Source of the DNA: Trichosphaerium sp. ATCC 40318
Lineage: Eukaryota; Protista; Tubulinea
DNA length: 64,000 bases
Assembly: GCA_038496445.1 (NCBI GenBank)
Contig: JALMLS010000159.1
Coordinates: 53,084 to 117,083, forward strand
Direction of reading: 5' to 3'
Shown here: one piece after another, positions 1 to 62,500 of the stretch
How the letters are laid out: the number at the start of each line of letters is the position of its first letter
Position numbering within the stretch: position 1 is the stretch's first letter
The notes under the pieces: generated by a model
Told to the model about the DNA's origin: nothing
Databases searched by the model: none
What the model saw: the letters and a program-made list of their open reading frames with translations, nothing else
Made by a program: the position numbers and the translations under genes

Positions 1-353
1 TCTTTGCCCTGGTTATCACAAAGGCTGTTTTGCATCAACGTTTAAGGACGCTATCAAGCCTATTTAAGGGGTTTTTGAAAAATAATAATCAGCATTGGAA
101 AATCAATCTTCTTTGGGAACAGTTCTCATACAACAATGACTAAATATGGCTTGATTTACTCGCAATACTCATAAATAGCAAACCAATAACGGCTTTGAAA
201 AAAAAAACACGTGGAAAAAAAAGTCTGTACACTTCAAGCAAGTGTTCCCAGATCACACGGGTCATACAGCACACCATAAAGAAAGCATTTAAGCAGAAAG
301 AGGGTATGTATTTACTTCTACGGCAAACGTTAACTCTTGCGTAGATTAAAACA

Positions 354-2279
354 ATGACGTTTTGGCTAGTTGGAGCACTAACAGCGTTGGCAATCGGAGT
401 GATTTTGATATTGCGGAGAAATAATAGCTCCGGACAGTTACCTGGCCCTCCGAAGCTGCCTATTATTGGTAATTTGTTTGATATGATGAAAATGAGCAAA
501 GACAGGAAAAATATATTGAACAAGGCACATCATCAACGGTTTTTTTTCTAAATAATTTCGAAGGCAACTCGAATGCTATTTGTATTCAATTGTCCGTGAC
601 AAAAAAAAATCTTGTCACGTGACATCGCAAAAATGACATTTGAACCTTGTTTGCGCAACGTGTTTTGTTAACTGATTCGAGCTACTATTTTATGATGTTT
701 AATGCTTTGCTATAGTGGAAGAAGAAGTATGGCAGCGTCTACACCTTATCTGTGTTCCGTTCTGAATTCGTTGTTCTCACCGAATACGAAGACATTCGCA
801 AAGTTACACTTCAGCGTCCTAATGCAGCTTTCAATAACTTTCTGTTTGACAACATGAAAGCGATTGAGGTAATCCGATACTTAGTGCGATGTATCTGATA
901 TGTTTATAGGAGCTTAGATTGAATAAAGGACTTGGGACATCATCTGGGCAAGAGTACAAAGACCTAAAGAAAGTGATTGCGCCAAAGTTTACAAACAATG
1001 CAATACAAAAACAGTTTGCTGTTATTGTGAATGTGTTTGTAGAGTTGATGGAAGAACTCGGGCAACTAGCAGATTCAAAAACACCTGTAGATGACATAGA
1101 CATTATTGCAACACGCACAACACTTCGTGTGGTTACACGTGCAGCTCTGGGATCCCCAAAGTCTTTCAACGGTACAACGCAATACCAGATGTAAACTGAT
1201 TTTGACATATTTATTAGACAACAAACAAGCCGAGACACGAATGTGCCTTATGCTCTCCAAGTTAATGAATATGATGATAAAGAGAGCCAATAGTCCAATA
1301 TCGTATTGGCACATTCCATTTCTCAAACCAAAAGTGCGTGATGTCTAGTTTCTTGATTGTCAGAAACTTACTTTTTTTTTCAAGGCTGAAGTAGAAATTG
1401 AAAAAGAACTCAAGGAGTTTGTCTATCCCTTTATTGATAATGTTATTACTGCTGCTACAAAATCAATGTCACGTGATGATCATGAGCCAGAAAATATGAT
1501 TGAGGTACGTTGTAAAGATAGCAAGACGTGTATATTGATGTTCTTGTCTTAGGTGATGTTAGCACATGGTTTTGATAGAGAAACAGTTTTCCAAAATGGT
1601 CTTGGTTTGTACTTGGCTGGTACAGAAACTACTTCAGGAGCGCTATTATCTATTATATACACTCTTTGTTTATATCCAAAGTACCAAGACATGATTTACA
1701 AGGAAGTAGCACCAACCATGGCACAGAACAATCTTGATTATGCTGATTTCAAAAAATCGACGCTTGTTGACAACTTTGTCCAAGAAGTCTTACGTATACA
1801 CCACACTGCAATTCTTACCTCCAGATCTCTTAAAGACCAAACGATAGAGCTTAAAAACGGACGTAAGTTCACCATGTACTGTTTTTCTAACAAACCCTAA
1901 TTGGTTCTTTAGCTGTCTTCTTAAAGAAAGGAATAAAAATTTTATGTGACACGGGTAATCTCACCTCAATGTTCAAAGATGCTTCAAAATTTAATCCTGA
2001 ACGCTTTGAAAATGGTGGTACGTAGCACTGTAGATTTAGATAAGTCATAATAGTATTTTCCTAGAACCAACAATGTTTACCTTTGGATTTGGAAAACGAA
2101 GCTGTACTGGAAAAAACCTTGCTGTAACAGAACTCGTCATATTTCTGTCACTTCTTTGTTATAATTTCAAAGTATCAATGGCTCCAGGTACCCACATAAA
2201 CGATGTTAAAAAAGTGAACAAACCTATGCTTGGATATGAAAATCTCTCAATATTGCTGGAGCGTAGGCAGCACGTGTAA
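354..2279 (+). CDS. Cytochrome P450 (multi-exon; intron 1 is GC-AG, 525-715)
   Basis: N-terminal TM anchor then PGPPKLPIIGNL; I-helix AGTETT; EVLR (ExxR); PERF; heme motif FGFGKRSCTG; exons join in frame. Confidence 0.95.
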
Positions 2280-2580
2280 AAAATGTTCCGGAAAAAAAAA
2301 TAGCACATGGCATTTACTTGTCTGTGGCCGATAATCGGTTATAGTTTGTTGTCACTGATTTTTTATGTTGAATAATCAGTTAGTTTACCTAAATTAATAA
2401 ACAACTTTACTGGCTTCCGTTGTACCTTGTTGTTTTAATATTCTTATTGAACAATATAGAACAGCCGAAAAGTATGACTTCTAGGCACTCAGGCAGTATC
2501 ATGTAAAGCGATAGCAGTAGGTTGGCGGTTAGAGAATACATTGAATTAGAGCATTCCGCTACAAAACTGAAAGTGAATTA

Positions 2581-2800
2581 GGTCAGGACCTACCACGTGA
2601 CAATACCATCAATACACTTTTGTACAATTGAGCCTTAATTTATGCTTATTCAGGGTCTTCGTGGTGTTTCCAAGCGTCAAAGGCAAAATAAAAAATGTAG
2701 AACCAATTTGAACAAAAGTTTATTAACTTTATGTTTTCCTTTTCGGGTTTTGTGTTCTTTTCAAAAACATATTCAACCTCCGCCCACGAAGCAAGCAACA
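2581..2800 (+). repeat. Left arm of long inverted repeat (partner 9142-9535)
   Basis: 2623-2800 is the exact reverse complement of 9142-9319 (178 bp); 2581-2617 matches 9498-9535 with about 4 differences; both arms have TA on the outside. Confidence 0.93.
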
Positions 2801-2809
2801 TGTGATCAA

Positions 2810-3488: not shown

Positions 3489-4317
3489 ATGGAGGTTCTA
3501 GTACGCAAAAAAAGAGGCTGTAAAATTAAACAAACACTCATAAGTCTAGCCTGAAATAAATGAGTACAAACTCATGGTATTTGGCCCTGTAGGAGTTGGA
3601 AAATCAACAACAACAATACAGTTCGTTCAAAACTCATTTTTAGAAGAACCCAACGTAGAAGACTTGGAATTAACGTACGGGCGGAGTTTTTCTAAACCAC
3701 TTTTAACGTTTTGAGTTTAAAACAACTCTAAAACGCTCACACAATAAGGTATCGTAAGCAAGTCACCATAGATGACGAAAATATCATGCTTGACATTCCT
3801 GATACATGGCCACGTACTGAGTTTTCTAGTTTTATTGATGAACGAGTAAGTACATAACATTTAAGTTGCTGGCAATCTAACAGCAGGTTGTAGAGCGTTC
3901 GGTTTGGTCACGGTTTTATTTTGATGTACAGTATAACAGACAGACAATCATTTGAAGAAATACAGAGGTTCTTTGACGAAATTTATGGGTAACAACAATA
4001 GACTTCAAAAACCACTTATGAATGATCTTTAATGATCTATTTCGACATTCTCAAGGACTGAGTAACTTGTTTGTAGGTACAGTGAAGCACAAAACAAGCC
4101 AAGTGTACTTGTTGGAAATAAAGTAGACTTGGAAGAAGACAGACAAGTAACCACAGAAGAAGGAAAGGAACTTGCACAAAAGAATGAATGTTTATTTTTT
4201 GAGGCATCTGCTAAAACACGTGTCAATGTTGATGAACAGTTTTATGAACTTGTAAGAGAAATTCGTAGACTTAAGGCACTCCATCCAGTAAAACAGCGTA
4301 GATGTATTGTAATGTGA
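3489..4317 (+). CDS. Divergent Ras-family small GTPase with CAAX (CIVM)
   Basis: Spliced: [68 protein letters not shown]. Confidence 0.9.
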
Positions 4318-9132: not shown

Positions 9133-9141
9133 TTTATCACG

Positions 9142-9535
9142 TGTTGCTTGCTTCGTGGGCGGAGGTTGAATATGTTTTTGAAAAGAACACAAAACCCGAA
9201 AAGGAAAACATAAAGTTAATAAACTTTTGTTCAAATTGGTTCTACATTTTTTATTTTGCCTTTGACGCTTGGAAACACCACGAAGACCCTGAATAAGCAT
9301 AAATTAAGGCTCAATTGTAAAACTTTAACTAAAACTAAAGAGTTTCATTCGGAAACACATAAATACTGATAATTCGCGTACAATGTTACGAACCATGATG
9401 ATGTGAGGTGTTTTAAAGCAGTTTTAAGAATTCCAAAAATGTGTCAATCAATCACGTTTTTATCAGAAATTTTCTGACGACTTTTTTTCAACTTTTTGTG
9501 TATTGACGGTATTGTCACGTGGTAGGTGCTGGGCC
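9142..9535 (-). repeat. Right arm of long inverted repeat
   Basis: Reverse complement of 2581-2800, with ~180 bp extra (9320-9497) that the left arm lacks. Confidence 0.93.
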
Positions 9536-12176: not shown

Positions 12177-12222
12177 ATAATAAACTCGTCAAGGCTGATA
12201 TGTTAAGTACTCATACAGTTCA

Positions 12223-16368: not shown

Positions 16369-18590
16369 ATGCATTACTTCGTGATCTGCGCCTTGATTTT
16401 GTTTGGAGTGGCCTTGAGCGATTTTAGCGTAAATATACAGGTACCTTCAACCTTGATAGACGAGTCACCTCAAACAACACCAAATCCTTAGGATAAAATT
16501 ATTGCTACTTCCTCTGAATCTTATGTATCGTTTAACTTCGACTGGCACTTAAATACTGAGGAAACACCTGCTTGGGCACGTGATATGAAAAGTTTTTGCT
16601 GTAACGGTATCAGGCCTCTTATTTTTTCGTAAACCGCAGGTTAACTGCTCTATTCTTGTAATAGACCTTGATAGATTGTCAAAATTAGCGAAAGGGCTGT
16701 CACCAGGGTAACTGCAAAGCAAGAGAAAAAATTATTTCTTTATACTTTTCTGCACGTGACACACTAACAAAAAATTAGAAATCTGCGTATCGGAGGATCA
16801 GAAGAGGATGAAGCGGTTTATGATATAAATAATCCGCCAGATTGCGCAACAAGTAACTTTAAAAAAAGAACTTTTTTTTTGGTTTTGAATAAAAAATTCG
16901 TTGCCATTATCATCAGTTGGCTAACTTTGCTGTGTGATAAGGTAATTTTTGCTTGACCATGGCAAGATGGCATAAAATTGTAAACTGGGCCAAGGACGCT
17001 AATATACGTTTGGTATTTGGATTGAACGCCATGAGGTACTGTCAAAAAGACAATCTATCTTTTTTTTTGTTTAGTACTCCTAACATTTTCGAAGAGGAAG
17101 AAACAGCTCGAATGGCATGACATGGGATCACACTAATGTATACGACTTTCTAAAGGTATACAATAACGTCTGGAGGTATTATCACGTGATAACTAACCTT
17201 TCCTTCTAGTACACCGCTGACAACAAGCTGGAAGTGTACGGATTTGAGTTTGGAAATGAATTGGAGCACAAAGTCGATGTCAAGGTACATCAAGCCTTCA
17301 TATCTCAAGATCATATCTCTGTTTTCAATATACGCTTATAGATTATGGCCAACGATTACTTAAAAGTTCGTGAGTTTATCAACGAATTATGGCCTGATGT
17401 ATCATCACGACCAAAGCTTATCGGACCTGACGAAAACTTGGATGTTTCGTATCTTGACACTTTCTTACCAGTATGACCGACTCCCAACATCCAATCAGGG
17501 CTTATACACTTAATTTTTATTATAGATAGCTGGAAAAGCTATTGATATATTGACATGGCACTGTTATATTGGGTATGGTCTGGACAAGGATTTATCTAAA
17601 AAAATAATAACGCCTACTTTTTTAAACAAATCACACGAACAAGGCAATGTACGTGTTCTCTTCAACACTGAATGTATCTTACTTCTAAGATAGGAAATAT
17701 TGACTACAGTGATGAAGTATTCACCTCATGTTGAAATATGGGTTGGCACGTGTAGTTTTTCAAGCAGTATTCTTTTCTTCGTTTTTTCTGATTGTTTCTT
17801 AAGGCGAGACTGCAGCTGCTTGGCATAGTGGTCAAGATAAAACAACTAATGCTTTTATCTCTGGTTTCTGGTATATTGATCAATTGGGGACTCTTGCTCA
17901 GCTCCAGCATAAGGGTTTTTGTCGTCAAACTCTGGTATGTTTTCATGTTGTTTACAAGTTTAAAATTGCGATTTGTTTCATAACTAAGAACTTGGTTGTC
18001 GCATAATATTATCGCTCGTTCTCCTACTTATTATTATTTAAATAGATGGGTGGTTACTACGAGCTTGTAGATAAACATACGTTTGAACCTAATCCAGATT
18101 ATTGGACAGCATTACTTTGGACAAGATTAATGTCTTCAAAAGTCTTATCAATTCAAAGCTCTGATGCCAATACCCTCAGAAGCTATGCGCACTGTACCAA
18201 AGATGTCAAAGGTGCTGTTACGTTAGCTCTTATAAACCTGAGCACTGAGGAGATATCTGTGAATCTGGATGGACTCACTTCATTCTCTGGCAAACAAGAA
18301 CAGTACATGTTAACAGCTACTGACTTGCGTGGCTCTGAAATCGATTTGAATGGTAAAAAACTTGAATTAGATTCTTCAGGAGATATACCAAGTATAAATC
18401 CTGCTAAGATTACAAGCAAAACAATAACTCTGGGTGAGTATTTTATCAAATTTAGTTGCACAACTTTTTTCTTTTTCCTTCTTTTTTTTTTTTTTCTTCG
18501 AAGTTTGTTGAATATTTACTCATTATCAAAGGTGCACTGTCATATGGATATTTCGTGTTACTAGATTCTGGGTTGTCAGTTTGTAATTAA
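16369..18590 (+). CDS. Glycoside hydrolase family 79 (heparanase-like), secreted
   Basis: Signal MHYFVICALILFGVALS; LRIGGS; FEFGNE (acid/base); IWVGETAAAW (nucleophile); FCRQTL; PNPDYW; LRSYAHC; two GC-AG introns. Confidence 0.93.
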
Positions 18591-26222: not shown

Positions 26223-27449
26223 CTATTCGTCTGGCCAATCGTCTTCATCTTCTGAAGAATCTATACCATTCCTACGAGATCTTAATTTACTCTTCATATG
26301 CATTATATGCTCTGCTTTTTCATCAACATCATCCAAATCAATATCTTTTTCCAAGTCGATTACTGCAAGTTTTTTACCTTCAGCATGAGCAATGTATAAC
26401 TTGTATCTATCTGAAGTAATAGCTGTTATACTATTCAATCTTATATCAGTTTTTAATGCAACTCTCATTGTCATATCAAACTCAGTAATCCATGAAATGT
26501 AAATACGAGATTTAAGAAAAATATAAGGTTCAACAAAAACACTTGTTCCATCTGGTAACAAACAAAACGTTGTATCATGTAATACTTCAGGTTTAGCTAA
26601 TCTTAAATGAATAATTGAGAAACTTATAGAGGAGCCATCATCTTCCCTGTTTACTTTGAAAATAGATGTGCTCATTCCCTAGGTTTTGATTGAGAATCCA
26701 AAAACAGAATTCAATAGAACTCCACAAAAAAAAAAATCACTGAATCTTTGGCTTCATGAAGGCCACAATAAGTAGTTATGTGGCTTTTGAACAAATCAAA
26801 GCAAAATAAAAGCTGTATGGAAAAGATCCTGACAGAAAACATATTGACACGTGTTGCGACAGGTCAAAACAAGCTGAGTCATTTTTTTTGATCAACCAAA
26901 AAAAAAAACACAAGTGCACACTGTGTTATCCCGTACGGTTTGTTTTAGTACCACGTGTCTATCCAATACACCTATTTGTGTTACTGCTCGAAAAGTGTTT
27001 CCGAAGGGCTTAAGAGAAGGGCATTGGCAGTACGATAGTTGATCATTTCCGTTATCTTTAACAGTCCCAACAAACATGCCAAATTTACGAACCAAAACCA
27101 GCTAAAAACTGTTAATTATTGACTTTCAAAGCGACAGAGCGCGTACTCTGCCATCTGACAGTACAGCAAGCGCAGAAATTGGACTTCTTTCTAAATCAGC
27201 TACAACCACCTCCTGTACGTCTTTCTTGACTCCTATAAACGCGATATTAGACTCGCAAGTACAAAAACTCGTTAAAATGGTTTAAACACATACACCCCAA
27301 ACACGAGTTGTCTTAAACGCCTCATACCAACCACGGCATACCAGATTAAGCCCGTGCAAGCTTTTTTTTGAAAGATATTTACAAATCATGTACAAAAGCT
27401 CGTAAGGTATTTCATTAAAGCCTATTTCCTCAATTTGTTGTAATGACAT
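26223..27449 (-). CDS. F-box protein (5 exons)
   Basis: MSLQQIEEIGFNEIPYELLYMICKYLSKKSLHGLNLVCRGWYEAF is an F-box; splices in frame into ORF 26223-26675. Confidence 0.75.
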
Positions 27450-27770
27450 GCTGGGTTATGTTTTTTGAGTTTATTTCTCGCATTGGATTCAGAGAAATGC
27501 GGCCAAGTCTTTCAAGCACAACGTCAAGTTTCCGAAAGGAACTGTTTTTAGTTTCGAAAAAAACCGAAAACAGCCGGCTGCTAGTCAACTTGTTTTCTCT
27601 TCAATAAAGGACCAGGCACTATGGATCCTTCCGTCAATGTAAAACTTGCTATTTTACAAATACAGTGGTTGTTTATTGTTACATTACGTCTGTTAAATGA
27701 CTAACATATAAAGAGAGCAAGTGCTGTTAAAATGGCTTCAGAATTGTTTGGTTTTTTTTTTTGTCTGTTT

Positions 27771-29719: not shown

Positions 29720-30037
29720 TGTTGCTCTGATTTGACAATTGAATGAATAAAGAAACCACTATTACAAAAACTTGAAATTTCGCACTTTTTCGGTTGTAAT
29801 CAGTGAATTGTTCTGGTCATGCTTTTTATTTTGCCTATTTTCGTACTCAACATCAAGTACACATGATAGTACAACTCAGACGTAAATATCGCTTATCACG
29901 TGGCATCTACCAACCGAAAAACGAAGGTTTAGGCCCATACGTGCAACTCCAATGTTAGGTAATGCACTGCAGTTTAGAATGCGATAGGCGATAAAAAACC
30001 GTAAGACTTGAAATATTTGCTTTATTTAAGTACTACT

Positions 30038-35400: not shown

Positions 35401-35738
35401 TGAACGTAATATTTGTGGTAACGCTGGTTTAGAGACGTTATTTATAAAGTGCGTTGAAACGTCAATATCATATTTTAGTTCTGCTTCATGTACAGCGTTG
35501 TACTCTTCGTAAGTCGCCAGTAAAGGCTCGAGGAGGTCAATAACTTGTTGTGATAGCTGCTCTGTTTGATTTTTGGCTTCAAATCTAACAATGTCATTAG
35601 AAATAGCGTAGTTCAATACCCATACGCGGTTTGAACTACATGGCCTATAGTGTTCCAATTTCCTTTGGCTATTGCATCTTCTAGCTAGCTAATGATCAAT
35701 AATGCGATTATTAGCAACAAGCTCACCGTATCTGCCAT
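32469..35738 (-). CDS. Large helical-repeat protein, possibly Integrator subunit 10-like
   Basis: Multi-exon from MADT|LEDAIAKGNW; C-terminal ALVLMQFKWP and DVDILEEYIYM resemble the INTS10 C-terminus as I recall it; not confirmed by alignment. Confidence 0.5.
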
Positions 35739-35847
35739 TCGCGCTGCTTTTCCGTACAATTGAGCGCTTAAAACTACTCTCGTCAAAACGAGTAAAACGA
35801 TCTGCCTGCTTGATTTAGACTTACTTCTACTATTCACGCTAAACACC
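35739..35847. promoter_or_regulatory. Compact bidirectional promoter region
   Basis: Only 109 bp separate the predicted divergent ATGs at 35738 (-) and 35848 (+). Confidence 0.45.
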
Positions 35848-38800
35848 ATGTCTTGTTGTGGCAAGCGTGGAGCTGAAGACCTCGGTACTGACTGGATGGA
35901 TATGGAAGCACTCCTAGAAGACCTGGATGAGTTACCAGCAGAGCTCGCAGAGATGGGCGGGCTTGAAGCTCTCGCTGAAAAATTGGATACGGACCTACAA
36001 AATGGTATATCGGATGAGAGTACAGATATTGATACTAGAAAGTACAAGTATCCTTTTAGCGCCGTAAAATCTCCATTAACATACTTTTTACAAAACGACC
36101 CAAAACTAGATGGGTATTGTCAAATAACCTCTAGATGCGCGTAATTACGCTCCTTGATTGTATAGCTACGGCGAAAACAGATTTCCAGAACCAGAGGCCA
36201 GAGGCATTATTTTATTGTTTCTAGACACGTTCAAGGACCCAATTCTCATTATTCTTATCGTTATTGCTATCTTTTCGCTTATCTTGGGTTTGGCTGTACC
36301 AGATGTATCGGGCTCACGTCGTTGCAATGACATTGTGTGCTACAAAATCAACCAAGTCGTTAGCGCCGGGGTTAGTGCTCTACAACTTGCGCTTTTTTTG
36401 ACAACTTTTTCGCGCTGATTTTACTGGTTAACCTTGTGGTGGCGTTGTAATCGCTAAATACGTTATAGGCTCCATACCCTCCTCCATGTCCTCAAGCTTT
36501 CGTTGAAGCATTGGACGGTCCATACATTTGCGATAGAGGGTTCAGTAACGCTTCGAGTACGTATTTATCTGTTTTCGGCGTATAAAGGCGCAAAACCTAA
36601 ACTCGCCTTTTTTGCAATCGTTGAGCCTAATGTATTGTAGATCCGTTAATATTTGCTGATTTTGCTCCGTTTTTCTTTACTCAAGAAAATCTGGACAAAT
36701 GCGAGGATCCAGACGATGATGATCTACGTGATGATATTATATCACTCACTGATCCAGTACGTTGCAAACAAGTCTTTTAAATAAATCTGAGTAGCGGTAG
36801 CTATCAACTTTGTTTTTTTCGCTTAAAATCGTTATGCGGTGCTTATAAAGTATCCCTAGGCGCTAGGATTTGCACCTACGTGTAATGAAAACGATCCAAT
36901 CGCACAAATATACAACACCTCCGTTGAACTTAAAAAGTGCGATAAAACAGTAGTCGAATCAAGCGAAGAAGCCAACGTAGAATGGATTGAAGGTTTGTAG
37001 AGCTTCAGCAACTCTTTTTTTCTCCTTTTTTTATTTCAGCTTTCTTTACGTCTACTACATCACAAGAGCCTTAAATACTTATGTGATATAGGTGTGGCTA
37101 TTCTTATTGCTGTATTGATTGTATCTACAGTAACTGCTGTCAATGATTGGCAGCAGGAGAGGCAATTTCGGTCATTAAGTCGTGATGCTTCAGATGTTGA
37201 TATTCGTGTAATCAGAAACGGTATTGAAGCTCTTATATCTATTCATGATGTCGTTGTTGGTGATATTGTTATTCTTGAGAGTGGCGCTGGTGTACCTGCA
37301 GATGGTATCTTCATCGAGGGAGACGGTATGGCGTGCATTCTTGTGTTTTGTGTTTTTGCTGTTTTTTCACTTTGTTGTGGTCTTGTCTTGCTCATTTTGT
37401 TCTAGATTTATACGTTGATATGTCAGCAATGAACGGAGAAGCTTTACCTTCTCAACGTAAGGAATCAAGACCTTTATTACAATGTGGAACGAAAGTTACT
37501 TCTGGTAATGGTAGAATGCTTGTATGCGCTGTAGGTGTTCATACTGAGTATGGTACGTACTAAACAACGAATCATAAATGGTAAGAACTTCGTTGACTGT
37601 TTATTTCAGGTAAAATTTTTTCGTCTTTGGCTCAAAAACCGCAAGAGACTCCTCTACAAGAGAAACTAAACTCATTGGCTCTTAATATTGGTTATCTTGG
37701 TACAGTAGCAGCTGTACTTGTTTTCATTGCTATGACAATCTGGTGGGCTATCACAGTCAATATCCTTAAAACTATTTTTTTTTGTCTTCTTCTGATCATT
37801 CAGAGAGCCTTGTTTTACGTATTTCTCCTTAATATCTTCACGTAAGTGCTTTAAAGCATCTAAACTAGCTGGTCTTTTGGATGCCTTCCTTATTGCTGTA
37901 ACAATCGTCGTAGTAGCTATTCCAGAAGGTTCGTTTTTTAAATATTTTTCTTTCCACCATTTACTGTGACTCTTTGATATTTTATTTGCTAAGACTTATA
38001 TTAGGTTTACCTCTCGCTGTAACAATTTCTCTTGCATACTCTATCAAACAAATGAAGAAAGGTATGCAATAGAAAGTGATAATCAGACGCCTAATAATGT
38101 TTTTTTGCACTAGATCAAAATTTGGTTCGTCATCTTGCTGCTTGTGAAACTATGGGTGGAGCCACTCAAATTTGCTCTGATAAGACAGGAACATTAACCG
38201 AGAACAGAATGACTGTTGTACAGGTATTGTTACATGAGTTTTCTTGCTTTATTCTTACTAATATGTCGTTTTTTCTTAAGGGACTCATTTGTGGTCGTGT
38301 TATCACTGAAGAGCATGTAAAAGAAGAAAACAGAAAAGCTTTGAAGAAAATGTTTCCAAAGAAATTGAGGAAGCTTATATGTCAGGGTATCAATCGTAAC
38401 TCAACTGTACGTTGATTTTAATGCAAGAAATCCTTTTTTTTCCAAAAGTTTTATTTTTGTGTCTGACTTGCTGCCACTCATTTCTATTTTTGGCTATTCG
38501 GTCTTTGAGTGTGTATTATTCTTTATTTTCTATCTTTATTTGCTATGCTCTCGTATCGTTTGTTGGTATTGATTATGACGTCGTTTAGGCTAGTTTTATT
38601 GTTAAGGACAATGATGGCAAGAAAATAACAAAGGATGTCATTGGTAATCCAACCGAGGGTGCTTTGATTATATTTGCTGATGCCCTTGGTTATCATTTTA
38701 AGAAGATGAGAGAAAAAGGACCAGAAAAGATCAAGACGTATCCACCAAAACGCCAAACTCCATTTTCTTTTTTTTTATTTTAGTACCAATGTTGTTTTTT

Positions 38801-41043
38801 TCGTTGACTTTCAAAGCTTTGCGTTCTCCTCAAAGAGAAAAAGAATGTCTACTGTTCTCGCATTAGAAGACAAAAAATTCCGTTTATACTCAAAGGGCGC
38901 CTCTGAAATTATTCTCAGACGCTCCACGCACTACTTAGATGATGAGGTACGCCAACGAGACACGGATAGCTTTGTTTTAAATTTTTGTTTCCGCGAAAGT
39001 TTCTTTATTGACGGTTTCCCAATAGGGTACTCGTGTACCTCTTACTCCTGAAGTAATAGCTGAATTTACAAATAAAATCGATAGCATGGCTAACAACGCT
39101 TTACGTACCCTTGGTCTGGCGTACCGTGATTTTACAAAAGTATCAAAAAAATGGTCACTAGAAAATGCACCTGAAGATGAATTGACTTTTATTGGTGTTG
39201 TTGGTATTGAAGTATGGCACTTTTCTTGTTTTTTAAACTATTAATATTATCTATACATGGATACGTGTTTTATGAGGTCTAATAGCTGAATAGGATCCAG
39301 TACGTAAGGAAGTACCTGAAGCTGTACGAATTTGTCAAGGCGCTGGAATCTTTGTTCGTATGGTCACTGGAGATAACATTGCTACTGCTAAAAAGATTGC
39401 ACAAGAATGTGGTATTCTTACAACTGGTGGTGTAGCTTTGGAGGTATGAAACAGACAGTTACATTTGCAAGAGATTGTATACCAGCAATGTCTTTCTTTG
39501 AAGCTTTTTTTTCTTTTTTTCTTCAATTAAACTTACAATACCTATTAGGGTCCTACCTTCGCTAAGTTATCTGATAAACAAATTGATGAGGTTCTACCAC
39601 GTCTTCAAGTATTGGCACGTTCTGCACCTGCAGATAAGGAACGTCTAGTTAAGAGGTTAGTTGAAGACAAAATCTTTAATTAACAGTGATATTTATTTTT
39701 TGTTTAGACTTAAGTTCAATGGTGAAGTAGTTGCTGTAACTGGTGATGGTACTAATGATGCACGTGCTCTAAAGAGCGCAGATGTTGGTTTATCTATGGG
39801 TATTGCTGGAACAGAAGTAGCTAAGGAAGCTTCCGGTATGTTCACCAAAGATCGTTTTCTTGTTTTTATTAACTTGTTTTTCCTGTTAGATATTGTCATC
39901 TTAGATGATAACTTTGCTTCTATTGTAAAATCTGTCCTTTGGGGACGTACTATTTTTGATAATATTAGAAAGTTTTTACAATTCCAGTTGACAGTAAACG
40001 TTGTACGTAAAAATGAAGACAAAAAGAGCTTTTCTTACTTTTTTCTTATTTTGAGCCGTTTTAAGAAACATTCCCTACAGAGCATCATATTTCATTGTTT
40101 ACTTACTGTATCCTCCAGGTCGCTCTAGTTGTAGATTTTATTGCGCCTGTCGCTGGTGCTTTCCCGCCACTAAAGGCAGTGCAACTCTTATGGGTCAACC
40201 TTATTATGGACTCTATGGCAGCTCTTGCTCTTGGTACTGAGAAACCAACACAAGATATGCTTGATAGAAAACCATATGGCCGTTCTGGTACTTTACTTTC
40301 TAACATCATGATGCGTAATATTCTTGGCCACTCCGTCTTCCAAGTAAGTAAAAAAACAAAAAGAAAGTATTTCTTTGCACAAATGTGTTTCTTTTCTTCT
40401 TTTTTCCTTCTTTTTGTTGCGTATTGATTGGTTATAATTAGATTGTTGTTTGCTTTATTATCCTCTGGGGTGGACCAGAACTTTTTGGCATTGAGAGTGG
40501 TAGAGGTGTATGTGATACCTTTCCTTTACGCGTCCTTTTGACGCTTTTTTTAAAATTGTTTCTCCTCTTTTAACTTTTTTCGTAGACTGAACGTGCTACT
40601 GTTCATTACACACTTATTTTCAATACATTCGTTTGGATGCAAATATTTAATGAATTCAATGCTAGAAGAGTAGACCATAGTACGTCAATAGAAAGCAAAA
40701 GACAAACAAATGAATTCAAAAAAAACTCGAAAAAAAAATTAACAAGTTTCTTTTAGAGCAAAATGTGTTTGCCGGTTTGTTCGGTAAAAAGACATTCAAT
40801 TGGATATTCCTTATAGTCCTTATTGTAACAATTGGTGTACAAATTATTTTTGTTGAACTAGGAGGTGACTGGACCTCAACAACATCAATGCCAATCAATA
40901 TTTGGATTGTTTCTATTCTCATTTCTGCACTTGAGATTCCAGTAGGGTACCTACTTAGACTCATTCCTGTACCACCAGAAGCATATGAGATTGATAAATA
41001 CACCATATTTGGTGAACCTAAACGTATAAGAGCTGGTAACTGA
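35848..41043 (+). CDS. P-type IIB (PMCA-type) Ca2+-ATPase
   Basis: YGEN, WIEG, VPADG, MNGE (TGES-like), [60 protein letters not shown]. Confidence 0.97.
36048..36165 (+). other. U12-type (minor spliceosome) GT-AG intron
   Basis: Donor GTATCCTTTT; branch CTCCTTGAT just before TAG; removal gives RKYN-YGENRFP. Confidence 0.88.
37760..37841 (+). other. U12-type AT-AC intron
   Basis: Donor ATATCCTT; branch TTCTCCTTAAT; ends ..TTCAC; removal restores [36 protein letters not shown]. Confidence 0.92.
38738..38816 (+). other. Probable degenerate U12-type GT-AG intron
   Basis: Donor GTATCCAC; branch-like TTCGTTGAC 8 nt before the 3' end; phase 2; removal gives [14 protein letters not shown]. Confidence 0.5.
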
Positions 41044-41355
41044 ATTGTTTTTGGCTCAAAATAAAAAAACAGATGAAAAAAGAACAAAAGAAATAAGGGA
41101 AAGGAAGCAATTATTTAATAAAAAGTTTCACATTTTTAGTTATCTTTGTTCACAGGAGTATAATAGAAAAGATTAACGATAGTGCATAGTACTATTTTTG
41201 AGCTTGTCGTTGACTCGTTGTATTTAGTATAACAGGGTGCGGCGAATAGTTACAAGATACTTGTAACATCGAACTACAACTGTATGGTCCTGTAACCAAT
41301 AAGATCAAAACTATTTCCTTTTCACATGAGCAGAAAAGAGTGAACCACCATTTGC

Positions 41356-41514
41356 ACATGACCACAACACTGAGAATGTGTCTTGATCAGTCTCACCTAC
41401 ACACTCGTACCAAGGCCGCTACTTATTCGTAGGGCATAAAAAATGAAAGTTCAGGTAGCCTGCTCAAGACTAGAACATTGTTTGGTGGACACATTCTCAG
41501 TGTTGCAGTCATGT
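41356..41514. repeat. Intergenic inverted repeat (27-bp arms), possible MITE or hairpin RNA
   Basis: acatgaccacaacactgagaatgtgtc (41356-41382) versus gacacattctcagtgttgcagtcatgt (41488-41514), 2 mismatches. Confidence 0.7.
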
Positions 41515-41644
41515 CATCTGTAACATCTGTGCATGGCACTTCAATAGCTCCAGCAATAACTATCAACGGGTCTCCATTCGTAACCATACACTGCGCAAAA
41601 CTGTAAAACTTAACCACAATTAAGTTTGTAGAAAACAAAAAAAA

Positions 41645-43526
41645 ATGCTGAGATACACTCTTCTGTTTCTTTTCTGTTTCATTTTGGTATTCTGTCACTC
41701 TCTACATGATTCTTTGTACGCGAAAAAGAAGCTAGTTCATCATTTTGTGCCAGAGCATAAACGTTACATCCCAATTGTTCGAAATATCTTCAATACCCAC
41801 GTGGTAGCAGAGGTAAGAGAAAGATTCACGTGATTATTCTTTTTTTTGACCGTTTTAGTCTCTAGACGCTTCATCTTCTACTATTTATCCTACAGACTAT
41901 GGAGCTGACCCTACAGGGAAGACAGATAGTACAGAAGCATTTGAAAAGGTTTTACAAGGTAACGGTTTTCGCAATGTTAAATGACGTCTTAACACGTGTT
42001 TAAATAGCGCTTCTTCGACGTAACACAAGTGGCCACATGATGGCAAATGATATTAATGATTTGGGAGGCGCTTCGGTTGATTTGGGTGGCGGAGATTACG
42101 TTATTTCAAAGCCTATAGTGATACCTATAAACTACGGCAACTTTAGATTTGTTAGCGGTACTATTTCGACCTCAGCTGCGTTTTCTGACTGACATGTTGT
42201 TGTGTCACGTGCACACATCCAAGTAATCACTCATTGGTGTTGTTTTAGGCACCATAAGAGCTTCTAACACGTTTCCTGAAACTGATTTCCTGATATCTGT
42301 TGGCGGTCCATGTACGAACTCTCAAGGGTCTTGTAATGAGAATGTTGGGTTTGAAGATATGTTGCTTGATTCAAACCATCGCGCTCTTGGTGGTATTAAC
42401 ATCATACGTACAATGGGCGCAAACGTTGGACCAAAGATGTTTTTCATTGGATACAGACAAGCTGGCGTTACAGTACGTCACTTGAAACGTTGTGTTTTTG
42501 AGCTTTCATCGTGCTCTCTTTTGACTTTTTTTTGTTTTTTAGGTCACAGGTGGTCATGAGACTATGATCCATAATAGCTGGTTTGGAGAGTACTACTATT
42601 CCGATTCAAGGAAAAACCAATGTGGTAGTTCAATGTCACGTGGTATACAACTTTTAGGGAACGATCATTTTATCTCAAATACAATCATATTTGGAGCGCA
42701 TATTGGTACTAAAAATCTTTACAGCTTGGACTAACAATGTTTGCTAGGTGTTGAAGTTACAGGTGCTGCAAATTTATTAAAAGGAGTACATACATGGAAC
42801 TGTGCAACTGCACAGGGAGGTATTGGTATTCTTGTAAATGCTCCAGGATATACACAAAACCGTCTCTTGGGTAAGCATAAAAGCAATATTGTTTCGTTCT
42901 TCCTCTTTGTTCATTTTTTCTCTCACTTGACCTTAATCCTGTTTTTAGGTGTTTACTTAGACTATAATAGCATCGTAGCTGTAGCTCCAGAGCATTTAAC
43001 GATATCAGACTCATTTTTCCTTTGTGGTGGTAACGTAGTTTTGAAGGCGACAGAAAAACATACATCTATTCTGGGACTTAACATTATCGGTAATCAGTTC
43101 GACGTTTGCCACAATACTAGTGTTATGCTTGATGAACGAGAAGCAAAGTTTACTACCGTTCAAGACACTATAATACAAGGTAACATGTTATCATCTAGCT
43201 ATAGTACAGGCAGTACACAAGCAAGCGCTTCACTTCGTCTTGAAAATTCAACAAAATGGCATTTTGATTTTAGCAAGATTTTACTCTTCCAATCAATCAA
43301 GCACGTGACTTATAGTATTGAAATTGAAAATGGCGAATTTACAATGCATGCTTCAAGAAAACCCGTAGGAAATACAGTAGACGTTGAAACAAGTCATCCT
43401 GTAACTGCTACTGTACGCACTTTCATCAATGTTTTTCGTTTGTTTAACTGATTTTGAATAAAGGTTGAGATTCATGTTGATCAAAGTGAGCCTTCACACG
43501 CATGCAAAAACGGAGTTTGTACTTGA
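41645..43526 (+). CDS. Secreted pectin-lyase-fold protein, QRT3-like polygalacturonase
   Basis: Signal peptide; YPTDYGADPTGKTDST; INDLGGASVDLGGGDYVISKP; GTIRAS; GGHETMIH; GVHTWN; YLDYN, all resembling plant QRT3. Confidence 0.8.
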
Positions 43527-44239: not shown

Positions 44240-45354
<1,115 letters not shown>

Positions 45355-46919: not shown

Positions 46920-48355
46920 ATGCGCACGTGTATTTACTATTTTATTGGCGTAATACTGCTTGGTTCTTGTTATGCTAAAAACGAAGTAATGAGTAGCAGT
47001 ATATATCTAGAAGCTTCCGGCGATAATATCGCTTCATTACACGTGATGATTAATTTTCAAGTTGGTGTTGTGAAGTCTACGATAATAGGGCCGCGTGATA
47101 AACAAGTATCATTCGGTTTTATGAGCGATAAGGTACGATTTTCTGCAAACGAACAACAAATAGTAAAATAGTCTTTTGATTGTGGAATTTTCAGGAAGTT
47201 CTGTACGAGTGGGTGCTATCTAACGGTACAGTGCTTGAGTATAACACTTGGATTAATGGAGGGAGATTATTACAAGTACAGCAAGACTTATCGATAGCTT
47301 TAATACCACAAGATGAAGGAGACGTTACAGTAACATTTTATAGAGCGCTCGAAACTAGCGATGTACGTTTTTTTTTTTCGTATCATAATTTATTGGTGAA
47401 CGCACTATTTGTATTACAGACTCGATCGATAACGACCTACATAGGATCTAGACTTTCAGTTTACGGATGATATGGGTAGTAAATTAACATGTTATTGGTC
47501 TATAGGAGATGGGTTAGAATCCGGGAGTAAGGAGTTGATTTTTTTAGAATCTTATTCACTTGAGAGTTCTTCGATAAGCGGTGGCGCCATTGCCGGTATA
47601 GGTAAGCGTTTTGTATCTATTATCACGTGATTTTAAAATTATAATTAATCGCTCACGTGATTTTTTTTTATAAAGTCATATCAGCGACATTGGTTATTAT
47701 GGTTGTTATTGCGATAGTGATTACATTATATTTTTGCTGGGTTAAAAAGGTATTTTTAGATAATTATGATTTTTTTTTTTGATCAATTGCAGTTTTCTAT
47801 CTCTTCACTGTCTTCACATGATCACATGAGTATGGTAATAACTCTTCATTGTATTAGGAGAAGCCTAGGATACTTTCAGAAACAACACAAACTCCACCGC
47901 CTAGGATGTATGTAACGAATGTATCAAACAAGAAAAATGAAACAACATCAAGAATTACAAACGAAGATATAACATCAAAGAGTAAAGTTGTTTCAGTTGA
48001 TAACGGACCAAATTCTACAACACGTGAAGATACAACGACAGGAGGAAGTAGTGGTATTAAAAGCGGTACTGAAGAAAACTCAGAGAGTTCTGGGACACTT
48101 GCAAGTGTCATAGAAGAACAATATGTCACTGGCGGTTTAGCACTTTCTTCATCACCAGGATCTTCAATCGCTTGTTCTGTTTCAGAATCAGGGACTGCTG
48201 TACCTGAACCAACGTCTTCTATTGTTTCTGAAACACCTTCAAGTATGAGGAGTTACTCTGTTTCTGTTTCAGAATCACTTACACCAAGTGGTCAAAGTAC
48301 TCAAAGTAATCAAAGTGATAGTAGTAGCAGTAGTTCAGAAAGTGATGATTTGTAA
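46920..48355 (+). CDS. Single-pass membrane protein: signal peptide, DOMON-like ectodomain, Ser/Thr-rich cytoplasmic tail
   Basis: MRTCIYYFIGVILLGSCYA; GDVTVTFYRALETSD; ISGGAIAGI|VISATLVIMVVIAIVITLYFCW; Ser-rich last exon. Confidence 0.65.
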
Positions 48356-56222: not shown

Positions 56223-58496
56223 TTATTGAGTAACACGAACAAACACCCATTGTTGGTCTCCATTGTTAGTAATTGCTGCCATTTTAGCCTAAATTACAAT
56301 GTTAAGCTACATAAATATCAATCACGTGACGTACACTCTGACGTCTTGTAGCGCCAACACCTCCATCAAGTGCTCTTGCAGGGGTATACGAAGGTGTTAA
56401 AAGTGTAAGTACAATGTTGCCACTTAAATCGCTGGTTTATATTACTAGAGCTGCATGCCCATAAGTGTACATTGCTTCCAGGACCACCGCCATCAAGGCA
56501 AAATTGAGTATTTCTCTTTTGGTAAGAAAAAAGACCGTCACCACGTGGTAATTCGATCCAATGTTGGTTGTAGTTATTCACTCTGTAGTTCCAGAGATAC
56601 ACCTATGTAAGAAAAGTCATTCAAAGAAAGAAAACTAAGTATAAAGTTGGAAAGTCACGTGCGTCATTGCCACTTGCTCCACCCTGGTTCCCATCTAATG
56701 CAAAAGCCAAGTTGTTACTCTTTCTGATACTAAACATATTGCTACTTGGCATTGACGTAGGTCCGTTGTATGGTTTCAAACAACCATTTGCAACAAAATG
56801 TTGAATAGTTCCACAGCATTGTGCTTGAGCTTTGCGTGAGAACCTATCAAACTTATAGTCTCTGTAAAACATTGTTAAACAAGTATTGTATTTGTAATTG
56901 CGTAAAATCTTACGGATTATTTGTGAGACCTGCCATGATACCTTTATTGTCATGATTACATCCTGAACTATGTCCAATCTCGTGACCAATACAGCGTCTC
57001 AACCCTGGGGCTCGTTGCCAAGAGCACTGAGCTTTTGAGGAGGTCTATAAAAGATAAGTGAAGTTCTTTTTAGCAATGTAGTACTATGCTGCGTACACAT
57101 AAGTTGTTCGAAGTCGCCGCTCCAGCACGACTTGAATGTTGACAATCGTTCAATAAAATACCTGCTGCGGTATTTGATGGAACATTTAAGTCAGACCTCC
57201 AAGTGTTAAAAGAAGACAATAGTCCTGAAGGGCATTCTCCTGATGCATAAGAACGTGTATTCCATGCTTCAGGTCCTATTATATGTTAGCTTAATAGTTT
57301 TAATAAAAAGAAAAGTGTACCTGAAGTTTCTCTGACCTCAAGTGCTACAACAGTCACGCGAAGGTTCTAGCTAATGTAAGTTACATCTAAGAGTGAGAGT
57401 GTAGATTCAGTACAAAGTCAGATTCGTAAAAGATACCCACATCCATCATTGCTAGCAAATAAATGTTCAGAAAGGTAGAGGAATAAAAGATAGTACCTGT
57501 TTGAACATAAGCCAAAGTTTGAGCAGCAGTTCCAGTCCGTTGTTGAAATCCCACGTTAGCAGCAATGGCAAGAGTGAGTTCGTGTTTTGATTGTGGACAA
57601 GGTAGCTTTGGGGGCGAAAAAGGAAGCGTGTCGCCTTCGGGGATGCCAACCCTGCGAATAGTTGCATTAAAAGTCAAGTAGTACAACTTAAGGCTACGTA
57701 CCTTTTGCTGATCGAGTGTTGGCTCTCCATCTCGCTTTTGAAAGAGCCAGTAGATTCTCTTTTCAGGTGTTAAAAATGGAGAGATGGAACAAAAGAAGTA
57801 CCTCAATAGTAAGTAAGATGCACTTCCAGCTTTCGACAAGTGATTTTGTGACATGAACCTTTTGTGCCTGATAAAAACACGTGTTAGAAGCCCAATGATA
57901 TTTTTGTATTACCTTGATACAGCGTCGAAATCAATACGCTTGTTGTTCAATGTAAAGCCGCCAGTGAAAGTACCATCATCACGTGTGATGAAACGCAAAT
58001 CAAGATGAAAATCACCGATTGCCTTGTACATGTTCGAAGGGATTGGTAGAAACGTCCTGTTCCCTCCATTCTGTACAACAATCTAATACAAGTCAACGAG
58101 AATTCGATGGATAGGTGAGTACGACTGTGGCTAATGAGGTCGTTTGTGTTGGCGTACCTTGGCATCATGAGAAAAGATTGAGTGTTGAACACAAGTAAAT
58201 GTCCAGTTTTTGCCATTTTCGAACTTGAAAATCATCTCTCCTTCACGTGGAAACGCTCTCTTTAATCCATCAATTGGTTGAAATGATACTATACCACGCG
58301 TTAAATAATAATACGATAGCGAAGTACGAGTTTATACTGCGGATCCGTACTTTCGTCGATAACGTCAACATGTTGAGTGTTATCCCAGTACTCTTGGTCC
58401 AGCAACAAACAACTGTCACTAGCGCCACTAGTCGAGTCAGTCAAGATTTACATTTAGGTTCATTTCGCAGTTACGTATAGTAAATATCCTTATCAT
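56223..58496 (-). CDS. Secreted reprolysin-like (M12B) zinc metalloprotease with C-terminal ricin-B lectin domain
   Basis: Signal MIRIFTI|LALVTVVCC; HEIGHSSGCNHD + Met-turn GIMA (in a frame not shown in the ORF track); ricin motifs FCLDGG, NYNQHW, NINQRF, GDQQW. Confidence 0.85.
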
Positions 58497-58879: not shown

Positions 58880-59200
58880 AAATACGACTACCACACGGTA
58901 GTTCTTTCCAAGTAGTGGTTATAGTTGTTCGCCCATGTACACCTACATAACATGAAATGCAAAAGAGTAAATTTTATTCAGCAGTTTGACAAAAGTCAAA
59001 TAGTTGTTTGGAACCATACAACGGACCTACGTCATGCCAAGCAGCGATATGTTTAGCATCAGAAAGTGCAATTTTAGATGGTAATGGTGGAGAAGGTGGC
59101 AAGAACGCATGTACCTGACTTCCAATTATAGTTCCACAACTTGTGCTTGAGATATGTATGTATCAGTTTTATCAGAACTTAACTGCTTACGGATTATTTG
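58880..59200. pseudogene. Scrambled relic paralog of the metzincin-ricin gene
   Basis: 59014-59103 matches 56664-56772 inverted; 59128-59199 matches 56806-56922 in direct orientation. Confidence 0.6.
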
Positions 59201-59524
59201 GTTATTTATTTTGTAATTGTAACTACATTAAGTTGGGACTCTAGAACATGCGGTTCTAGAATCTTTCAAAAGCAAAAGTAGTACAACATCACCTAAAAAC
59301 GCACAAATAGTACAATGTTCTCAACTGTGGCAACTCGTATTTAGACTGGCTCCAGCACGTGACACAAATCCTATCTGATATACATGTAAAAGCAGATACA
59401 AGAAGAAATTTCACCATACTAAGACGCAAAATGTCTGATGTTAGAAGAATTCTGTTGACTATGATCTTTTAACTTTCTTTGTACTTTTCTGTTGGTATTC
59501 AAATAGTGTTAATTATAATTTCAA

Positions 59525-62500
59525 ATGGATGTTGAAGGTAATAAGACATATACTACATCGATTTGTACGTTTTGTGACTAAACAATTTTAAAAAGCGCCT
59601 TGGTACTTCTACAACGCACGGAGAGAGTGTTTTCAAGGCGTTCCGAGTTCATTTCGCACCTTGTTAAAAGATATTTCACCAAACGGTACGTTTACAGTTA
59701 AATGTCATTCTGCTAACAAAAAAACGATTAGGAGAAGACGTAGACATAAATAACGATGTTCTTAGATTTTACAAAGTTCGTGTCAAACAGAAAAAAACAG
59801 AAAAAAACGTACTAACTTTTTTTTCAGACAAACGATTCAAGTTTTTGGTGTTACCAGCTTCATGGTGAGGTACATAACACATATATTCAATTAATACAGT
59901 TATTAAAAAATTTTAGTGGGTACCTTATAACCCACGTGATAATCACGTTATCGAAAGAGCGTATCGCAAAAAAGAGAGCGTTTTGTACTTGGATAGTGGT
60001 GTGACATTGTTTCTAACCCAGAATTTACAACGTGTTAATGAAACATGGAGCTTCACTCCAATAAAACGTATGAATGTATTAGCATCAGGTGTAGCTCCAA
60101 AAAAACCTGTATCGATCCCTGCTGTATTGCCAGCACCAAAAAGCCTTGGCATGGAATTTTTTGGCGTTGAATTATCTAAAGATGATAATGCAGGTACATG
60201 CTTAGTTCATTCGCTTGTTAATTTGCTTATGTCCTTCTAAATAATACTCATAGGAGAATATTCTACTGAAGCTGTGTATAAGCTACAACAGTTGCAGAAG
60301 CAAGAAGCAGAACTACAAAAGAAGCTAGAAAATACAATGTTAAAGCTAGCCATAAAAGATGAAGAGCCAAGTGCTTTTGAAGGTAAAACACCTCGACTGG
60401 TCCACTTGATATTTAAATTAAGCGTTAGATATATTCGTTACAAAACCTATAAAATCTACACCACCTCCAGTTTCTGACTTTGCACCAAGTACGCATAAAG
60501 CTACTAAACACACATATGATCATTAACTTTTTTCAAGCACAAGTTGCACCGGCTCAGCCAACTGGTTTTGAAGAACTAGACGACGAAGAAGAAGTCAGCT
60601 TAGTAAGGAAACCTAGAAGGTACTTTGACATAAAGTTATTCACAAGCGGCTAATTATACTAGACGTACTAGGACACCACCAAAAAGTAAAATCTCACTTC
60701 AAACAGATTCCAGGAAAAAAAGGGTACCACATTGTAACACGTGATTTATAATTAACAAATTAAAAACATAGCGTTCTAAAAGTCCAATGGTTGACAAAGA
60801 AGAGCAAAAAGCTGCAGCGTACGTGCAAATAACTTGAGCACAAAATTTTCTTGCGAACTACTCTGTTTGGTTACCAATTTCTGATCTTCTCTTCAGCGAA
60901 ATCGCAAAGATAAAGCAAGAAACTGAGCTAGCGAAGAGGAAGCTATCACAAGAAAGAGAAAGAGTAGCACGTGAGCTCAGAGAAGAGGAAGAACGTCTTG
61001 AAAAATTAAGACAGAAGAGGAAGCAAGAAGAACAAGAAAGGCAGAAAAGGATAGAAGAAGAAAAGAACCGTGCTAATAGTTTGAGACGCTCACGTGATAA
61101 AAAGATTACTAAACCTGATCCTGTAACATCATACGCACCTTCAGAAACTCACTACGCACTTGAGGAAGAAGATGAAGAAGATATCTTTGCAAAGAATCAA
61201 GAAAAAGAGAAAGAAGAGCAAGAAAGACGTTATTTTGAAGAGCAAGCCAGGAAAAGACAGGAAGAACAAGATCGCCAAATCAGAGAAGAAAAAGAGCGAG
61301 AGAGACAACAACTAGAAGATGAGCTTAGAGAATTAGAAGAGCAAGAACGAGCTGCTAAAGCACGCGCAGCACAAGCTCTTCGAGACAAGGAGAGAGAAAC
61401 TCTTGAACGTGCACGTAGAGCACGTGAAGCACGTGAAAGAGAAGAAAAATTACGTGAAGAAGCTGAGAGAAAGAGAATAGAGGAAGAAAGAAAGGCAGAA
61501 GAAGAGAAACAAAGGCAAAGAGATGAAGAAAAAGAAAGAACAAAAGTTTCAACTGAGCAAAAGAAGAAGCAGTTTCTTCAAGAACAGCGTGCTGCTGAAG
61601 AAGATGATAGGTTGACACAACAGCAGAGGTTAAGATTAGAGCGTCAGAGGCAAGAGAAGGAAGAAATGGAACGAGAAAGGGCTAGATTGCAAGCAGTACG
61701 TGATAAAAAACGAAAAGAACGTGAAGAACAACGCAAAGCAAGACAACTCGAAAAACAAGTTACAGAGCCACCAAAGAAAGTTGAAGAACCTACTACAATC
61801 GACGTTGAACCTTTACCAGAACAAGAGATAGAGCCAGAGGATGAACCTGTTGTCGAGAAGCCTAAAAAATACACATATGTTCCTGTTCCAAAATCTTTCA
61901 TTCCTGGAGCCAAACCAAAGCCTAAATCGATCCCAAAGAAGACTCAAACTAAGGTAGTTGTTCCTAAAGAAGAACCAGAAGAAGTTGAACCTATTGAAGA
62001 AGAGGTTGTTGAAACGAAAAAACCAGCACCTCAAAAAAGAAGTGGAAGAAAAATTCAAAGTCCTTTCTTGCAGAATGAGTCTGATACTGCTAAACCTATA
62101 TTCCCTTCTGGTATGGGTGGCGGTGGACCTGCTATTAAAATAAGGACTAGCTCTAATCCAACAAAGAGGGCGCAACCTGTACGGCACATGACAAATAGTC
62201 AATCTTTTTTTTTCAACCTTTTTTTTTGTTCAAATACCACATCCCTCTGATGTTATCAAAGGTTTCATCCAGTGGAAGATCTAGTTCTCCTAGTAAACGT
62301 ACTTCTATTCTCGAGCAAGATGATGAAGACGATATATTCTCTAGAGATGATACAAAGGTATGTTTTACTTTAACATTCATGTATTGTTTTTATTCAACTT
62401 GTTAAAACACGCTTCGTGATTGACCTGTTGGGTTTTTTTTTTGAAGGTCTAACTATATTTTAGCCTAGACGTGGTTCTGGAAGTAGTGAACCAAGGAACC

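Follow-up and report, generated by a model that had tools for sequence, protein, structure and literature searches.

The closest described counterparts of the element reported here are the highly iterated palindromes (HIPs) of cyanobacteria, namely HIP1 (GCGATCGC) and the alternate HIPs (PMC4390886; PMC13756078). These are exact short palindromes that occur at about one site per kb, in coding as well as non-coding DNA and in unrelated contexts, far above Markov expectation, and whether biased repair or selection causes them is under debate. Here, we analyzed a 64,000-nt stretch of DNA from the amoeba Trichosphaerium sp. ATCC 40318 (contig JALMLS010000159.1, positions 53,084 to 117,083 of the forward strand; hereafter the window, to which all coordinates refer), in which the hexamer CACGTG has the same properties. 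Its host differs from that of HIP1 in being a eukaryotic nucleus with spliceosomal introns, and the word itself is a 6-mer with an ACGT core, whereas the core of HIP1 is GATC. The spacing of CACGTG is Poisson-like or over-dispersed, whereas HIP1 is quasi-periodic, and the DNA-uptake hypothesis proposed for HIP1 is without an obvious eukaryotic counterpart. CACGTG works like a HIP, yet it is no phylogenetic member of the bacterial HIP family.

Several other systems resemble CACGTG in part. The E-box and G-box sites of yeast Cbf1, USF, TFE/MITF, and plant-type bZIP proteins have the same CACGTG core, a T at −1 and an A at +1, and some upstream lean. The known sites are promoter or centromere elements, whereas CACGTG is far more pervasive in the window, and we know of no case in which E-box or G-box sites raise the word ten-fold across the exons and introns of a whole genome. 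The Dcm/Vsr system of enterobacteria, acting on CCWGG, is similar in that methylase-linked repair shifts the frequency of a short palindrome, but its footprint, the depletion of T:G product words, is absent for CACGTG, whose enrichment is also much larger. Bacterial uptake signal sequences (USS), DNA uptake sequences (DUS), and Chi sites are likewise dispersed short words, found at about one per 1–5 kb, and are kept up by molecular drive or self-recognition rather than by local gene regulation. Unlike CACGTG, they are non-palindromic, orientation-biased, and tied to natural competence or RecBCD. Finally, bdelloid rotifers carry a domesticated bacterial-type N4-cytosine methyltransferase fused to a chromatin reader (PMC8885841). 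With this enzyme there is a precedent for a eukaryote having taken up a prokaryotic DNA methyltransferase by horizontal transfer. To our knowledge, genome-wide word enrichment has not been reported for bdelloid rotifers, and our literature search found no report of a comparable palindrome excess in any eukaryote.

Size and distribution of the CACGTG excess

A direct string search of the whole window found exactly 70 CACGTG sites, all within positions 208 to 61435, with a mean spacing of 887 nt and a median of 531 nt. This is the exact, grossly over-represented short palindrome at about one site per kb by which HIPs are described (Elhai, 2015), with 70 sites in 64 kb. An earlier reading of the window, based on the sequence only, had counted at least 70 sites by hand, about one per 0.9 kb; the exact count agrees, and all 15 coordinates named there were recovered. 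The more than ten-fold excess that it had put forward from an expectation of 5–6 sites was measured as 9.9-fold over base composition, with 7.1 sites expected at the window GC content of 36.4%. One hundred dinucleotide-preserving shuffles gave 9.4 ± 2.7 sites with a maximum of 16, an excess of 7.5-fold. Counted on both strands, the 140 observed occurrences compare with 14.2, 18.6, 21.8, 31.9, and 67.6 expected from Markov models of orders 0–4, which corresponds to ratios of 9.9, 7.5, 6.4, 4.4, and 2.07.

The earlier reading had named the loss of the excess under a third- or fourth-order background as what would refute it; the excess persists at both (order 3, z ~19; order 4, z 8.8). The order-4 model is conservative, because most CACGT pentamers derive from the motif: of the roughly 100 CACGT/ACGTG pentamers per strand, 70 are contributed by CACGTG itself, and the both-strand expectation is 10–17 once the motif is masked. 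CACGTG ranks first among hexamers at orders 2, 3, and 4, and first among palindromic hexamers relative to base composition. AGCGCT and GGTACC also look raised, which order-3 composition and GTAC splice donors account for, and none of the window palindromes compared behaves like CACGTG. The excess is real and strong, not an artefact.

The window is intron-dense eukaryotic nuclear DNA, since the public runs that match it are spliced cDNA contigs showing short GT..AG introns, 43–82 nt long where verified by cDNA (the predicted introns have a median of 57 nt). To divide it into sequence classes, we used a self-trained gene finder (Viterbi decoding of a Markov model with 3-periodicity and short introns modelled explicitly), which recovered 11 of the 12 cDNA-verified introns and gave zero overlap between strands. 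It is conservative, with missed genes counted as other DNA. The sites are distributed over the classes as follows.

Exons: 21 CACGTG in 26,964 bp, 0.78 per kb, enriched 6.0-fold at order 0 and 4.9-fold at order 2
Introns: 18 CACGTG in 12,804 bp, 1.41 per kb, enriched 17.7-fold at order 0 and 10.3-fold at order 2
Other DNA: 31 CACGTG in 24,232 bp, 1.28 per kb, enriched 11.7-fold at order 0 and 7.4-fold at order 2

Every class is thus enriched 5- to 18-fold over its own order-0 to order-2 background, and the claim of the earlier reading that exons, introns, and spacers are affected alike holds for the 21, 18, and 31 sites. Nine sites were placed independently by spliced cDNA contigs, two of them in introns and seven in exons. 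They are listed here together with one pair from a predicted intron.

57878..57883, minus strand: CACGTG in a cDNA-verified 45-nt intron (57868-57912), adjoining a branch-point-like CTAAC
60738..60743, plus strand: CACGTG in a cDNA-verified 48-nt intron (60724-60771)
59933..59938, plus strand: CACGTG in a cDNA-verified exon
57980, 58244, 60968, and 61091: CACGTG in cDNA-verified exons
61421..61435, plus strand: CACGTG pair, 9 nt apart, in an Ala-Arg-Glu repeat of a cDNA-verified exon
47624..47659, plus strand: pair of the TCACGTGA type, 30 nt apart, in a single predicted 83-nt intron

Intronic sites have no fixed position and occur anywhere along the introns. The flanks of the sites are unrelated, with an information content of about 0 beyond ±2 nt, so that, as in HIPs, the word is dispersed through coding and non-coding DNA and is not part of a longer repeat. 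With an excess in all classes, unique flanks, and the cDNA placements, the characterization of CACGTG as a HIP1-like signature in a eukaryote, beyond promoter E-boxes, is supported. Self-BLAST of the window returned merely a few short paralogous segments, and a repeat family or transposon remnant was ruled out by the unrelated flanks and the lack of extended flanking similarity.

The gaps between sites fit an exponential distribution (Kolmogorov–Smirnov p 0.50; variance/mean 1.3–1.7) and are no evener than chance, so the quasi-periodic or even spacing of HIPs is not seen. One zone is poor in the motif.

26958..41797: motif-poor zone of 14.8 kb, 3 sites versus ~16 expected, scan statistic P 0.00065

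This zone is about five-fold poorer in CACGTG, with CpG, ACGT, and the neighbour words at their normal share, and it spans three intron-rich genes, which encode a KH protein, a 916-aa MORN-related protein, and a Ca-ATPase. Because of this zone, we conclude that the force behind CACGTG varies regionally.

Coding constraint, splice donors, and sequence context

Within exons, CACGTG is read as nCA-CGT-Gnn at 16 sites and as CAC-GTG at 5, and never as nnC-ACG-TGn, the frame that would require Cys, Trp, or a stop codon. Both frames in use exceed the expectation from codon usage on the encoded peptides: 16 sites compare with 4.26 for nCA-CGT-Gnn (3.8-fold, p 1e-5) and 5 with 0.86 for CAC-GTG (5.8-fold, p 0.002).

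The word also reaches into splice donors. GCACGTG starts three of the seven predicted GC-AG introns.

17746..17803, plus strand: predicted GC-AG intron, donor GCACGTG, site at 17747
33952..34029, minus strand: predicted GC-AG intron, donor GCACGTG, site at 34023
56603..56662, minus strand: predicted GC-AG intron, donor GCACGTG, site at 56656

Predicted donors of the form G(T/C)ACGTG comprise 3 GT and 3 GC, versus 25 GT and 1 GC for G(T/C)ACGT(A/C/T) (Fisher p 0.015). A literature search found no paper that links GCACGTG to GC-AG introns. A further site falls on a conserved residue.

39761..39766, plus strand: exonic CACGTG in GCA-CGT-GCT (Ala-Arg-Ala), within the hinge motif of a P-type Ca-ATPase (39743-39775)

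The residue matching this Arg is a near-invariant Pro, present in solved plasma-membrane Ca-ATPases and in a Na,K-ATPase; a Pro codon CCT at this site would yield the neighbour word CACCTG. The gene is otherwise intact, with 24 predicted introns and zero internal stops. The GC splice donors and the Pro-to-Arg replacement in the ATPase motif suggest a DNA-level force that is able to compete with weak purifying selection.

The bases next to the word are biased symmetrically. T at −1 (A at +1) is found in 63 of 140 cases (p 0.001) and A at −2 (T at +2) in 66 of 140 (p 0.0002), and the two act independently, with TCACGTGA present at 15 sites versus 14.2 predicted from independent flanks. The CACGTG core thus comes with flanks typical of E-box and G-box factors. 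This symmetric preference for AT-CACGTG-AT suggests a dimeric protein that reads double-stranded DNA, and it does not tell a methyltransferase from a bHLH or bZIP reader. Within the 64-kb window we found no gene for a bHLH protein, a bZIP protein, or a methyltransferase specific for CACGTG or its core, of the kind associated with HIPs.

Among the non-genic sites, 12 fall within 300 bp upstream of predicted starts (2.44 per kb) and 2 within 300 bp downstream of stops (0.47 per kb; p 0.016), a modest contrast that depends on the predicted gene starts. Alongside this upstream lean, predicted exons and introns account for 39 of the 70 sites. Poly(dA:dT) runs of at least 7 lie within 25 nt of 17 of the 49 non-coding sites (for example 208, 11879, 34023, 47654, 50269, and 53473), versus ~19% of background positions. 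This weak signal recalls the architecture of nucleosome-free regions in yeast.

Related copies within the window differ at CACGTG sites. Two inverted-repeat arms of 201 nt (2620-2820 and 9122-9322) are 98% complementary, and the earlier reading had noted that they differ at a site, which the arm alignment confirmed.

9138..9143: CACGTG in arm B, facing CACATG of arm A
2799..2804: CATGTG in arm A (plus-strand reading), a CpG/TpG difference from arm B
4217..4222: CACGTG in a paralogous segment whose second copy (~12106), 79% identical, reads CATGTC

CACGTG versus CACATG is the sole change in an otherwise identical 44-nt stretch of the arms, and at 61430 the sequence is GACGTG in a transcript contig that is 99.7% identical to the window. 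The arms bound a ~6.3-kb cassette with inward-facing paralogous genes.

The remaining features of the window concern its genes. Open reading frames (ORFs) are short, with exons of ~40–95 codons, and tRNA and Rfam scans of the window were empty. Splice donors read AG/GTACGT rather than GTAAGT, and branch sites are CTAAC-like. The donor consensus explains the raised counts of AGGTAC and GGTACC, and it implies a matching 5′ end of U1. The draft genome of Trichosphaerium was described with a GC content of 37.7%, introns that average 75 bp and number 8.7 per gene, and single-cell transcriptomes (PMC10521059), in agreement with the window. PacBio and Nanopore reads are also reported there; the words “motif”, “palindrom”, and “methyl” are absent from that paper. 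A spliced transcript contig (run X2) is ~92% identical to the gene at 57098-58400 on the minus strand and has the same intron positions, with 210 other letters in place of the 348 nt at 57454-57801, and represents a paralogue or a sister lineage. A transcript contig from run X5 has a 14-nt insertion relative to the window at 56422, either an indel polymorphism or an assembly difference. The loose end of one cDNA contig is presumably a SMART-type cDNA oligo. A MORN-repeat coding segment is common to two genes 18.7 kb apart (12557-12922 and 31254-31618); its identity of 84% overall and 96% over 165 nt points to recent exchange or duplication of the repeat module. For the single-exon ORF at 26226-26675 on the minus strand, a search for independent assemblies or strains found no contig on record that encodes it.

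Neighbouring words and candidate explanations

Words one mismatch away from CACGTG occur at normal frequency. The nine neighbour classes sum to 189 occurrences versus 155–180 expected, and no class is drained; individually they reach 0.6–1.4 times the expectation, with counts of 5–42. One-mismatch variants of HIPs deviate most at the outer positions and least in the methylated core, and no clear pattern of this kind is evident among these classes. TACGTG occurs 25 times (21–29 expected) and CATGTG 36 times (25–30 expected). The observed/expected ratio of CpG is ~0.85–1.0 in non-coding DNA, and therefore escape from heavy CpG decay cannot cause the excess.

We built a 4096-state hexamer mutation model for schemes of gain and loss. 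A bias acting on the whole word yields a 10-fold excess with every neighbour at 1.0, which matches the observation, and three variants are equivalent at equilibrium: a fixation bias of S = 2.3, ten-fold slower loss, or ten-fold faster gain from all 18 neighbours. In contrast, T:G repair at the CpG only is capped at ~5-fold and drives CATGTG to 0.01–0.6 of expectation, and extending T:G repair to all four C:G pairs gives 10-fold only with TACGTG and CATGTG at ~0.01. Of the schemes modelled, only those restricted in their substrates, as in Vsr-type repair, deplete neighbours. CATGTG/CACATG and TACGTG/CACGTA, the T:G product words that Dcm/Vsr repair should deplete, are not depleted. The mechanism suggested by the earlier reading, methylation combined with site-creating biased G:T repair, consequently fails in its simple Vsr-like form, as CATGTG and TACGTG stand at 1.0–1.5 times expectation instead of being drained.

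Taken together, these results mark CACGTG as a true iterated palindrome of the HIP type, spread genome-wide through the nuclear DNA of an intron-rich amoeba. From the roughly ten-fold rise in every class, the synonymous excess, and the normal one-mismatch neighbours, it follows that the force acts on all six letters together as a unit and shifts the balance of gain and loss about ten-fold. In terms of the model, this would be equivalent to a fixation bias S of about 2–2.5 in non-coding DNA and 1.3–1.8 at synonymous sites.

As its source we tentatively favour biased repair or gene conversion that is specific to the word and directed by a putative palindrome-reading protein, a reading that we hold as plausible rather than probable. 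A dimeric candidate protein, either a DNA methyltransferase or a bHLH/bZIP-type binder, would read the palindrome and mark the strand on which it is complete. In a heteroduplex, mismatch repair or gene conversion would then resolve toward the marked strand, giving new sites a higher chance of fixation and a lower chance of loss than neutral changes have. Chromatin may affect how readily the reader reaches the DNA, which could produce both the promoter lean and the motif-poor domain. The methyl-directed repair model of Elhai for HIPs, which saturates near one site per kb (PMC4390886), serves as a lead only. A eukaryotic counterpart of HIPs, in which a domesticated prokaryote- or phage-type methyltransferase marks CACGTG and methyl-directed repair or conversion spreads it to ~80,000 copies, rewriting GT donors to GC and altering near-invariant residues on the way, is a bolder proposal that we rate as unlikely.

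Several points weigh against biased repair or conversion. Biased repair, direct selection, and mutation protection predict identical equilibrium word frequencies. Both the division into exons and introns and the three GC donors are predictions of the gene finder rather than cDNA-verified, and the Pro-to-Arg replacement at 39761 is a single case. Peptide contexts able to encode the word are barely inflated: (S/P/T/A)-R-(V/A/D/E/G) occurs 39 times versus 34.6 expected, and H-V 19 times versus 12.3. The two paralogue comparisons cannot be polarised and are silent on direction, and the same holds for the transcript variant. Moreover, we know of no sequence-specific biased repair of this kind in any eukaryote.

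Direct weak selection is a possible, though somewhat doubtful, source of the excess. CACGTG would be the dispersed site of a very abundant general regulatory factor, a bHLH-Zip or bZIP protein of the Cbf1, USF, or G-box type, that organizes chromatin, for instance nucleosome-free regions, with a small benefit per site wherever it lies. The second proposal of the earlier reading, a genome-organizing bHLH-type factor, may hold, and the symmetric T/A flanks and the upstream lean fit it. bHLH-Zip factors prefer a T/A flank around the CACGTG core, and the core and flank observed here match this preference. The higher density upstream than downstream of genes (2.44 versus 0.47 per kb, p 0.016) and the mild poly(dA:dT) association in non-coding DNA fit such a role as well, but 39 of the 70 sites are inside gene bodies and the density in tiny introns (1.41 per kb) equals that in spacers. 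The motif-poor three-gene zone could reflect gene-specific regulation. The spacing of the sites is Poisson-like and not regular. Selection would also have to act on each of ~80,000 sites in a ~70-Mb genome, and it would have to do so where sites cost a splice-donor T and a conserved Pro.

Mutation protection, which we regard as improbable, requires no fixation bias: a bound protein or efficient repair would cut the mutation rate of the intact word about ten-fold, so that sites arise at the normal rate and persist for longer. The variant of the model with loss reduced to 0.1 does give a 10-fold excess with unchanged neighbours, as observed, yet protection would have to be equal at all six positions and cover transitions as well as transversions. 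In addition, both paralogue pairs differ at the CpG of the motif and one near-identical transcript contig differs at a site, which speaks against an especially immutable word only as far as three cases allow (n = 3).

Very-short-patch repair of the Vsr/Dcm type, in which a methylated CpG or every C is restored from T:G to C:G so that sites are both protected and created from CATGTG and TACGTG, is very improbable. The CpG/TpG difference between the inverted-repeat arms is in line with it, but the model demands that CATGTG and TACGTG be drained, contrary to their counts, and the near-normal non-coding CpG ratio shows that heavy CpG decay is absent. A compositional by-product or artefact, whether of codon usage, splice words, a dispersed repeat, or assembly or polishing error, is scarcely credible: the donor consensus GTACGT is one step from CACGTG and order-3 composition explains the rises of GGTACC and AGCGCT, but the excess survives orders 0–4 in all classes with unique flanks, TACGTG is not raised, and the same sites are present in Illumina-type cDNA contigs that three studies provide independently.

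Significance for HIPs and eukaryotic genome evolution

The elements added by this analysis are a neighbour-frequency model that rejects T:G-only repair, the Pro-to-Arg replacement in the ATPase, the higher site density upstream than downstream of genes, and the motif-poor domain. In practice, CACGTG matters for gene prediction because of GC-AG donors, and analyses of motifs or methylation in this lineage could be confounded by it.

HIPs have remained unsolved in cyanobacteria for three decades, and the case of a eukaryote that has introns and chromatin and is probably sexual gives new handles on them. Introns and synonymous sites are near-neutral reporters, splice donors and conserved residues are gauges of the strength of the force, and giant-virus-derived inserts could act as dated “young” DNA. 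If CACGTG is a dispersed binding site, it would point to an unknown genome-wide chromatin system. If it is a methyltransferase-driven counterpart of HIPs, it would be comparable to GC-biased gene conversion, but sequence-specific. If word-specific biased repair or conversion is at work, it would constitute a new non-adaptive force on eukaryotic genomes and proteins.

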